Source of the DNA: Octopus sinensis
Lineage: Eukaryota
DNA length: 64,000 nt
Direction: 5' to 3'
NCBI RefSeq assembly: GCF_006345805.1
Contig: NC_043018.1
Location: 23,126,001-23,190,000 of the forward strand
Below, one piece after another: positions 14,601-17,600 of the stretch (its first letter is position 1; every line of letters starts with the position of its first letter). A model generated the notes under the pieces. The model saw nothing but the letters and a program-made list of their open reading frames with translations, made no database searches and had not been told where the DNA came from. A program made the translations under genes and the position numbers.

Positions 14601-17600
14601 CCACCTCTCAAAATTGCTGACCTTGTGCCAAAATTTTTTTTTAATTGTTTTTACTATGGGAGATAACTCTTTCTATCTGATAGCGTCGAGATGAATATAT
14701 TCACTGGATGTTGTTGTTACAGTTGCCGCACTAATACTGAGAACTATTTGAAACATTGTGAACTACTGGCTGTTAGCAAACACACCACCACCACCACCCT
14801 CATTCTCTCTCGTCTACTCCTATGTATATCTATGTGTATATGTGACTGTGTTCTCAACCAAACAACTGGTGTTGGTTTGTTTACATTCCTGTAACTTAAG
14901 TGGCTTGGCATAGGAGACAGACAGTAGAATAAATATCAGGCTGATTAATACACTCCTTTCATAGGAGTTTTGTGTGAAGTCCTTCCAACGAACTGCTCCA
15001 GCTTGTTAACTCCCAAATATGTCCCCTGTTCGAACTCTGGACCAATATTTCTTGACTAATTACTACCTTAGGTGCAGGCATGTCTGCCTGGTGATAGGTT
15101 TGCTTCTCAAGCACATGGTTCCGGGTTCAGTCCCAATGCGTGGAACTTTGGGCAAGTGTCTTCTACTATAACCCCAGGTCAACAAAAGCCTTGTAAGTGG
15201 ATTTGGTAGATGGAAACTGAAAGAAGCCCATCATATACATTTGTGTGTGTGTGTGCACATGTGTGTATATATCTATGTGTATATGTGACTGTGTTCCCAA
15301 CCAAACAATTGGTGTTGGTTTGTTTACATTCCTGTAACTTAAGTGGCTTGGCATAAGAGACAGACAGTAGAATAAATATCAGGTTTTTTTTTTAAAATTC
15401 TACTGGGGCGGGGGTAGGGATTCATTCTACTAAAATTCTCCAAGACAGTGCTCCAGCATGGCCACCATCCAATGACTGGAGCATGTAAAAGATAGAAAGA
15501 CAGGATTCACTGGGTCTCTTTATCCGGCACCTTATGGAATTAGGAACATTAACAGACTTGGTTTGTAATGATGGTGGTGATGATGATGATAATGGTTTCA
15601 TACTGATGTTGTAGTAGTAGTAGTAGTAGAAGCAACAGCAGCTCCTTAGCCAATTTCATTCAAACCCAATACAAATGTCAATATTAGTCCCATGGGTGGA
15701 TTTTAAGGACTGGTATCATGTCACTGAGCAGTTAAATTCTACTTCCTGCCCACATGAATAGGTAACCAATGTCTCCATTGCCGGTACCATTCCTACATGA
15801 TATGTTACCGATTCTTCTTGGTGCCAATTCTTCCCAGGACAGGTCTGGATCTAATGTGATATAATGTTGTGTTCACTCACAGAACACGCAGAAATACTAG
15901 CAACAGCTGTGCACTAGGTTTGAACTTACAACCTGCAAGCAAGCAACTCAATACCCTACCCACCTGATCACTTTCTACCAGATACTTCTATACGTCTTTG
16001 TGGTGGTTGGGGTGCAGGGTTTCAAATCTTGAATACAGTTATATGCTGGGTCAAGTAAGAGTAGCAGCCTTAAATGGGCACTGGTATGGTAACTTTTGTT
16101 TCCATAGCAACACTAAAGGCTCATGTGTTGGATTGTTACTATATAGCAACACTGGCCACTCAATGTTTAAATAGTTGCCATAGTAACACTCACCAGTCAC
16201 TTTGTATTGTTACCATAGCAACACTGACATTCACTGTTTATACAGCTCTCATAGCAACACTGATCACTCACTGTTTTTATAGTTCCCATAGCAACTCTGA
16301 TCACTCGCTGCTTATACACCTACTATATCAACACTAAACACTGGTCATATAGTTACTATAGCAACACTTACAGACTTATTACCATAGTAACACTGATGTA
16401 ATTGCTGTCTTTTATCACCCCCACAGTGTCACCTTACAGCTGCAGTATGCCCAGAGTCAACTAGAGAAACTGACCAAAATTAATGTCTTCAATGCTACAT
16501 TCCATATATGGTAAGTGAAAGGTCTATTGGTCTGTTGTTGTTGTTTATCATTTTAGACACCCAAACTCTTGCCCCTGGTACACTGTACTACTCACCACCC
16601 TAAATACATGTGTCATGCCAAATAAGCCCTGGCTGATCAAAACTCTTTGAGTTGGTTTAGTAGATGGAATCTGAAAGGAGGCTGCCAAGTGCCTGTGTGG
16701 GTGGGTGTGTGTGTATGTGTATCTCCTTGTCTTGACATCACATGATAGTTGTAAAACAAACATCCCCATCATCAGGTGGTGTCCTTCATTTCTGGTCATT
16801 CAGGAAAACCTGTTCGATCATGAGAAGGAAATGAGTTGGGTTGGTGACGTCTACTTTTCAATGTTTGCATTGGGTCAGATGGATTTATTGAAACAGATTT
16901 TCCTGCAGCTGGATGCCCTTCCTGTCACCAACCATTACTTGTTTCCAAGCCAGCTAAAATGTCCATATGACCAGACATGTTTTCATAGAGTATTGGAAAT
17001 GGGGGTAAAGACCCCCTTCGGTCATGAATGACCATGGAATTGCACCTAGAAAGTTACCCTCCTACACACAAGTCCGGGCAAGGTTGTTTATGGAAGACCA
17101 GCAGTCGCCCATGCATACCAGCCTCCCCTCTCCACGCCACCAGTGTTATCCAAGGGAAAGACAAAGGTCGATACAGCTTTGCACAAGTGACGTCGCAACT
17201 CATTTCTACAGCTGAGTGAACTGGAGCAACGTGAAATAAAGTGCCTTGCTCAAGAACACACCACGCAGCCCGGTCCGGGATTCGAGCTCACAACCTCACG
17301 ATCGTAAGCTCGACACTCTAACCACTGAGCCATACAGTGACCCTAATTTACAACTTTCATGCAATGTCAACACAAAGAGACATACATACATATATAGCCT
17401 TGTGAGTGAATTTGGTAGACAGAAACTGGAAGAAGCCCAATATGCCTGCATGGAAAATGGACATTAAATGTTGATGATGATGTGTGTGTATATGTATATA
17501 TATTTGTGTGCGAGTATAATTGTTCAATGTCATTTTGTTTAAGTCTTCTTATAATATATTAATTTCAGACAAAACCCTATTTAATAACCCTCACCTTTTT

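Follow-up and report, generated by a model that had tools for sequence, protein, structure and literature searches.

A degenerate X-box-bearing minisatellite at the 3' end of a BECN1 intron in Octopus sinensis

The stretch of DNA analysed here (the window; 64,000 nt of Octopus sinensis contig NC_043018.1) contains the Beclin-1 gene BECN1 on the + strand, from the ATG at 2491 to 23150. The gene was placed by tblastn with human Beclin-1 and two database Beclins; 13 coding exons were found, which are separated by GT-AG introns and join in a continuous frame of 407 aa. The best protein matches are molluscan, reaching 85% to a bivalve over the BECN1 C-terminal domain. An earlier interpretation of this DNA, made without database searches and referred to below as the sequence-only reading, had assigned the locus to BECN1, and this assignment is upheld by the tblastn placement, the 13 exons and the 407-aa frame. 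In protein searches with the C-terminal half of BECN1, its N-terminal half and TSFM, no cephalopod protein was among the matches, and the BECN1 matches were all under 400 aa; exact look-up of three window ORFs gave zero matches. The tail-to-tail neighbour of BECN1 is the gene for mitochondrial EF-Ts (TSFM).

The seventh coding exon found, which the sequence-only reading had numbered 9, is preceded by an intron of 2908 nt (13519-16426), at the 3' end of which lies a tandem repeat array, 13.6 kb downstream of the ATG. The same intron has SINE-like dispersed repeats at 14411-14531 and 15069-15500. The features around the array are as follows.

13456 to 13518, + strand: preceding BECN1 exon (20 residues), bounding the array-holding intron on its 5' side.
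16089 to 16397, + strand: minisatellite of nine units (u1 to u9).
16393 to 16397, + strand: CTGAT in the last unit, the best yUnAy branch-point candidate, with its putative branch-point A at 16396, 30 nt from the AG.
16403 to 16426, + strand: polypyrimidine tract and 3' splice-site AG (16425-16426), the end of the intron.
16427 to 16510, + strand: 84-nt BECN1 exon, seventh of those found to be coding, encoding (S)[27 residues](W).

The array is a degenerate 37-bp minisatellite in which nine units are arranged head to tail, beginning at 16089 (u1), 16128 (u2), 16165 (u3), 16200 (u4), 16236 (u5), 16273 (u6), 16310 (u7), 16343 (u8, truncated to 26 nt) and 16369 (u9), with successive spacings of 39/37/35/36/37/37/33/26. 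Each unit is anchored by ATAG[C/T]AAC, at 16104, 16143, 16180, 16215, 16251, 16288, 16325, 16358 and 16384; the u7 anchor at 16325 reads ATATCAAC. Tandem Repeats Finder (TRF) reports a period of 37 with 5.5 copies and 74-76% matches at 16143-16342, and a period of 74 fits the array as well. When the 64-kb window was searched with a profile HMM of the unit, nine significant copies were recovered from 16092 to 16398, and there were zero matches elsewhere in the window. The degenerate tandem repeat described by the sequence-only reading is therefore a genuine minisatellite, and its listed cores, coordinates and spacings are every one present in the sequence. Its estimate that the array ends about 35 nt before the 3' splice site likewise agrees with the 35 nt between the array end and the exon at 16427; the array adjoins the splice site.

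The cores had been proposed to be X-boxes, the binding sites of RFX factors, and by sequence class they conform to the X-box forms, GTNRCC(N0-3)RGYAAC or the worm form GTHNYY AT RRNAAC. Their quality was scored using a log-odds PWM built from 30 of the 31 experimentally validated Caenorhabditis elegans X-boxes in Table 1 of PMC3245922, under which the validated sites have a median of 18.6 bits and a lower quartile of 17.8. The cores, given without strand, score as follows.

16098 to 16111, unstranded: u1 core GTTTCCATAGCAAC, 21.3 bits, equal to the human DCDC2 X-box.
16135 to 16150, unstranded: u2 core GTTACTATATAGCAAC, with a 2-nt insertion that gives a 4-nt spacer, below zero as a 14-mer.
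16174 to 16187, unstranded: u3 core GTTGCCATAGTAAC, 18.6 bits (19.7 on the other strand), equal to the C. elegans bbs-7 X-box.
16209 to 16222, unstranded: u4 core GTTACCATAGCAAC, 20.7 bits, the consensus core and a strict consensus match.
16245 to 16258, unstranded: u5 core GCTCTCATAGCAAC, 12.2 bits, a weak site.
16282 to 16295, unstranded: u6 core GTTCCCATAGCAAC, 19.4 bits, equal to the C. elegans bbs-1 X-box.
16319 to 16332, unstranded: u7 core CCTACTATATCAAC, -0.4 bits, a dead site.
16352 to 16365, unstranded: u8 core GTTACTATAGCAAC, 17.4 bits.
16378 to 16391, unstranded: u9 core ATTACCATAGTAAC, 15.3 bits, the osm-6 X-box with one base changed.

Five units thus score 17.4-21.3 bits, within the range of the validated sites, two lie at 12-15 and two are negative. 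The 13 best PWM matches on both strands of the 64-kb window are all inside the array, against a chance expectation of 0.43 sites of at least 15 bits in 64 kb. Two matches to the strict consensus GTNRCCNNRGYAAC exist in the 64 kb, where 0.17 would be expected, and both belong to the array; if at most one mismatch is allowed, seven of nine distinct matching places are in the array (two strict and five with one mismatch). The form GTHNYYATRRNAAC is fitted by five units on direct reading. Three cores (u3, u6 and u1) are identical to functional X-boxes, namely those of bbs-7, bbs-1 and human DCDC2; the DCDC2 X-box is bound by RFX1 and RFX2 in EMSA supershift experiments and is required for promoter activity (PMC5024701).

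The cores are therefore X-box-grade, as the sequence-only reading had supposed, although its count of nine is too high; as u2 and u7 score negative, about seven are usable. Because the cores match proven sites and the RFX DNA-binding domain is conserved, at least five units would very likely bind RFX in vitro. This raises the question of whether the array works as an RFX-dependent regulator. In such a homotypic cluster, RFX dimers on five to seven X-boxes about 37 bp apart would keep 300 bp free of nucleosomes, and the array would be predicted to enhance or silence BECN1, or its neighbour TSFM, from within the intron in cells that express RFX; in a variant of this idea, bound RFX would slow RNA polymerase just before the exon. 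The concentration of the best PWM matches in the array, the scores of its five best units and the identity of three cores with functional sites all argue for such a role. Its position argues against it: validated C. elegans X-boxes lie 60-767 bp upstream of the ATG (PMC3245922), whereas the array is intronic and 13.6 kb downstream of it. BECN1 is also not a known RFX target; in the full-text literature searched, no paper linking RFX to Beclin was found, no RFX or X-box tandem repeat or minisatellite was described, and nothing was found on RFX in cephalopod regulatory genomics, the top-ranked cephalopod genome papers containing no mention of RFX. Weighing these points with those given below, we consider an RFX-bound regulator of BECN1 possible but rather doubtful.

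The pattern of conservation among the units bears directly on this question. Divergence from the consensus was measured in a curated unit alignment, in which the 2-nt spacer insertion of u2 was removed, outer flanks were masked and gaps were respected. From 5' to 3', the parts of the unit differ as follows.

Left linker: 32% divergence from consensus.
Left half-site: 22% divergence from consensus.
Spacer plus right half-site: 4% divergence from consensus.
Next three bases (ACT): 4% divergence from consensus.
Right linker: 23% divergence from consensus.

The best-kept stretch is an asymmetric block of 11 nt, ATAGCAACACT, which consists of the spacer, the right half-site and three further bases, and which agrees with the consensus in 95 of 99 alignment cells (4% divergence). 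Column permutation places this block beyond chance (P < 5e-5), an outcome that is unexpected under uniform neutral decay. The left half-site diverges significantly more than the block (22%; P = 0.0014) and does not differ from the linkers taken together (28%; Fisher P = 0.47), whereas the three ACT bases, which lie beyond the X-box, match the right half-site in conservation. Consistent with this, the best 14-column conservation windows sit 2-5 columns 3' of the X-box. The sequence-only reading had named a 14-bp near-palindrome as the best-conserved part, and this must be replaced by the 11-nt block; its related statement that cores are kept better than linkers applies to the spacer and right half-site (4% versus 28%) and fails for the left half-site.

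Several features of this pattern nevertheless speak for an RFX-bound regulator. The spacer and the right half-site hardly vary. Had the cores decayed as fast as the linkers, some one or two units would keep 15 bits (fewer at the higher rates tested), whereas six do so. On direct reading, 13 of 15 core substitutions fall at degenerate consensus positions, and substitutions at motif-tolerated positions are favoured with marginal significance when scores are summed (P = 0.06). The correlation of column conservation with the information content of the X-box is weak (rho 0.45, one-sided P = 0.054), and both marginal values count rather towards a neutral array. Something thus keeps part of the core, but the shape of what is kept is unlike a symmetric RFX dimer site, in which both half-sites would be under constraint.

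Comparison with other animals gives further information. The orthologous intron, identified by the same position and phase, measures 365 nt in Tegillarca granosa, a bivalve, and 387 nt in Bulinus truncatus, a gastropod, and contains neither a tandem repeat nor an X-box in either species. The array is therefore lineage-specific and is not a BECN1 regulatory element conserved at the orthologous position in these two molluscs. At each of these two BECN1 loci a single strong X-box lies elsewhere, inside the gene or close to it, which is a point in favour of RFX regulation. When three further animals are included, however, X-boxes are not enriched over the five BECN1 loci (2 matches versus 0.71 expected, P = 0.16), and the idea that BECN1 is a general X-box carrier was therefore rejected. 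Overall, of the RFX enhancer proposed by the sequence-only reading, the minisatellite and its X-box-grade cores are supported, whereas conservation centred on the palindrome is not, and neither the position of the array nor the other BECN1 loci speak for it.

The unit might alternatively be a copy of a satellite scattered through the genome or of a repeat borne by a transposon, in which case the X-boxes would reflect mobile-element biology. SINE-like and other dispersed repeats abound in the intron and throughout the window, and minisatellites are known to be carried by Helitrons, among other elements (PMC12001565). Against this origin, the unit has no second copy in 64 kb, and the flanks of the array lack terminal inverted repeats, target-site duplications and a tRNA-like head. 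A transposon context was rejected for these reasons together with the absence of an Rfam family.

Similar X-box tandem repeats are present in unrelated animal contigs of metagenomes, which would fit a dispersed repeat. A scan for two copies of ATAGCAACACT 20-32 nt apart returned 83 metagenomic loci, a number that is compatible with chance by a rough estimate; the majority are repeats unrelated to the array, and in many of them the period is divisible by 3. Complete tandem X-boxes are found at L006, L033, L037/L074, L003, L060 and L077, of which L033 is of animal origin, as it adjoins an intronless Jun-like bZIP gene. These arrays share only the core with the window; nothing else, including dispersed repeats, is common to them. 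A dispersed or transposon-borne origin of the unit is accordingly regarded as very unlikely.

With the right half-site forced by the scan pattern, complete X-boxes occur in 4 of 54 families versus 0.85 expected (P 0.005-0.04), a mild over-representation and the sole sign that X-box minisatellites may exceed chance. Since part of the core is strongly kept and independent metagenomic X-box repeats exceed the forced half-site prediction, a further reading is conceivable, namely that X-box minisatellites are a recurrent, selected class of elements in marine animals that serve as tandem landing pads for RFX. The present array would then tie the expression or splicing of Beclin-1 to the RFX programme of ciliated and neuronal cells. 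The likelihood of this reading appears slim.

The position of the array next to a splice site invites an explanation at the level of pre-mRNA. The array is on the sense strand. Its units, of the form ...CCAUAG CAA CACUNAY, each combine a YAG with a branch-point consensus 3' of it, and YCAY motifs are frequent in them. The array might provide a predicted branch point, decoy or alternative 3' splice sites, or binding sites for splicing regulators, affecting the 84-nt exon. Beyond the invariant ACT, the unit continues with a variable base, A (8/9) and Y (7/9), so that CTNAY is present in 6/9 units. For the real splice site, the best candidate branch point is the CTGAT at 16393-16397 in the last unit, where an AG-free zone (16388-16424) begins; this unit would be the likely source of the branch point. 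YCAY occurs 15 times versus a mean of 5.4, and YUNAY 14 times versus 6.2, both in the top 1% of window segments. By direct reading, use of the AG at 16386-16387 would extend the exon in frame by 39 nt without a stop codon, and intronic tandem repeats near splice sites have been associated with splicing (PMC4039745, PMC10078293).

These enrichments carry little weight, because they concern short motifs that are copied along with each repeat unit. The branch-point reading is also post hoc and leaves the invariant ATAGCAA unexplained; it shows, as does the YCAY reading, how easily a repeat unit gets a function assigned. The folding energy of the array equals that of shuffled sequences for both DNA (z = 0.23) and RNA (z = -0.44), so that a structured RNA, as well as expansion driven by hairpins or cruciforms, was rejected. 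The array is likewise not a duplicate of the real 3' splice-site region, with which it has no profile match and only chance-level local alignments (P = 0.82 and 0.07). Taken together, a function of the array in splicing is judged unlikely.

The explanation that we favour, and to which we give about an even chance, is that the array is a lineage-specific, decaying intronic minisatellite that multiplied a single X-box-grade sequence and that would very probably be able to bind RFX in vitro. A segment of about 37 bp at the 3' end of the intron would have been multiplied head to tail, probably through replication slippage or unequal exchange, and would then have decayed. The founding unit would by chance have held a sequence of X-box quality, which is why the array would carry seven such sites today, five of them on a par with proven RFX targets. 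The block ATAGCAACACT may be the high-complexity part of the unit that keeps the register, in which case the copying mode of the array would maintain it, and a higher mutability of the linkers, which are rich in T/TA and in CACT repeats, would add to the contrast.

The base rate makes this history plausible. From the exact score distribution, the probability of finding an X-box of 17.4 bits or more within a 37-bp unit is 5.8e-5, and the 64 kb of the window contain 15 minisatellite arrays, counted as repeats with a period of 10-100 and 3 or more copies. Because of these two values, several to tens of chance X-box arrays are expected in a repeat-rich genome, if its size is assumed to be a few gigabases; this expectation is a further point against a dedicated RFX regulator. 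The nine sites share descent from one unit and therefore count as one event, as should motif arrays within tandem repeats in general.

The observations that weigh against neutrality are the retention of the 11-nt block, the six units of at least 15 bits and the identity of cores with working worm and human sites, to which the over-representation of complete X-boxes in metagenomic 11-mer repeats can be added. On balance, we infer that selected function is lacking; most likely, the array as such has not been selected to regulate BECN1.

Either outcome would be of interest. If the array is neutral, which is thought likelier, it would be a warning that repeat copying alone can multiply a long, specific motif and even mimic conservation. 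Should the array indeed be occupied by RFX, no minisatellite made of X-boxes would have been described before it, and it would represent a copy-number-tunable link from the ciliary and neuronal RFX programme to a core autophagy gene, for which u2 and u7 would serve as natural negative controls.

Among known systems, homotypic clusters of transcription-factor sites in enhancers usually consist of independent sites that are conserved between species. The array resembles them in having several sites for one factor within 300 bp, but its sites stem from a single duplicated unit, and distant relatives lack it. Minisatellites that contain transcription-factor sites include the INS VNTR and the SLC6A4 intron-2 VNTR. 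A further example is hTERT MNS16A, which has GATA-1 sites (PMC5438627). The array is like these minisatellites in that units of 10-100 bp with one site each follow one another head to tail, within a gene or close to it, so that the number of sites scales with copy number; it differs in its candidate factor, RFX, for which the literature searched describes no minisatellite.

Functional X-boxes, represented by the 31 validated C. elegans sites (PMC3245922) and by human DYX1C1 and DCDC2 (PMC5024701), belong to the same 14-bp sequence class, as the identities of u3, u6 and u1 illustrate. These RFX/DAF-19 sites are single or few, promoter-proximal and mostly in ciliary genes, whereas the array offers seven tandem sites in an intron of an autophagy gene. 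Although the 84-nt exon is not known to be alternative and the array is unrelated in sequence to CeRep25B, it shares a sense-strand orientation, a place adjoining a splice site and short motifs that resemble splicing signals with intronic repeats linked to splicing, namely CeRep25B, a minisatellite found close to alternative exons of C. elegans (PMC4039745), and the human spl-TRs (PMC10078293).

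The last unit of the nine-unit minisatellite in BECN1 (Beclin-1), which carries the RFX X-box motif in most of its ~37-bp units, contains an ATAG whose AG (16386-16387) is a potential in-frame alternative 3' splice site. As judged from the sequence, use of this AG would extend the BECN1 exon that begins at 16427 by 39 nt, i.e., 13 codons, without a stop (16386-16426).

The BECN1 introns of the window are several times longer than those of the bivalve and the gastropod, and are filled by SINE-like repeats. These belong to dispersed families with many copies (at 15069-15500, at 14411-14531 and at over 20 further sites in the window) and often yield ORF fragments such as ...GAFYVPPAQ.... 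A further BECN1 intron segment (21029-21612) contains ORFs with reverse-transcriptase-like C-terminal sequence, which are probably a LINE fragment.

BECN1 lies tail to tail with TSFM (mitochondrial elongation factor Ts; minus strand, 26590-34656), the terminal exons of which are recognized by Pfam domains. Within TSFM, a large and very young minisatellite is present, and further tandem arrays occur in the window.

TSFM exons and other tandem arrays in the window
In ORF 26590-27015, minus strand: TSFM last exon, Pfam EF_TS
In 34222-34656, minus strand: TSFM N-terminal exon, Pfam EF-Ts_N
29661-31615, within TSFM (minus strand): minisatellite, 34-bp unit AAAAACTACAGCAATATGGCATAGCTCATCTATG, 57.5 copies, 97% identity
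688-867: 37-bp unit unrelated to the X-box unit, 4.9 copies, 96% identity
27925-28941: GAAT-rich, higher-order array, 96-104-bp periods
40887-41386: CT-rich array, 95-130-bp periods

The Beclin matches returned from the protein database were all shorter than 400 aa, and full-length vertebrate Beclin-1 (450 aa) was never among them; the word-index search therefore seems to miss longer proteins, which may explain the absence of cephalopod Beclin orthologues from its results.

Complete sequences of X-box grade, e.g., GTTACCATAGTAAC and GTTTCCATAGCAAC, are also found inside tandem-repeat units of unrelated metagenomic contigs, with periods of 20, 23, 31 and 39 bp. In L033, seven sites of at least 15 bits, as scored on a matrix built from 30 validated C. 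elegans X-boxes, lie within 1.3 kb on the 3' side of a Jun-like bZIP gene that has no introns.

X-box-bearing tandem repeats in metagenomic loci
L006, 1-1459
L033, 1200-2460
L037, 240-500
L074, 780-890
L003, 2950-3080
L060 and L077 (without coordinates)

At the BECN1 loci of two other molluscs, strong X-boxes occur singly. The Tegillarca (bivalve) gene carries one strong X-box, GTAGCCATGGCAAC, in a later intron (20.8 bits; L084:21802), and in Bulinus (gastropod) one X-box, GTTTCCATTGCAAC, is located 1.7 kb downstream of BECN1 (16.7 bits; L085:18148). About 0.26 strong X-boxes would be expected over these two loci combined, and one was observed in each.
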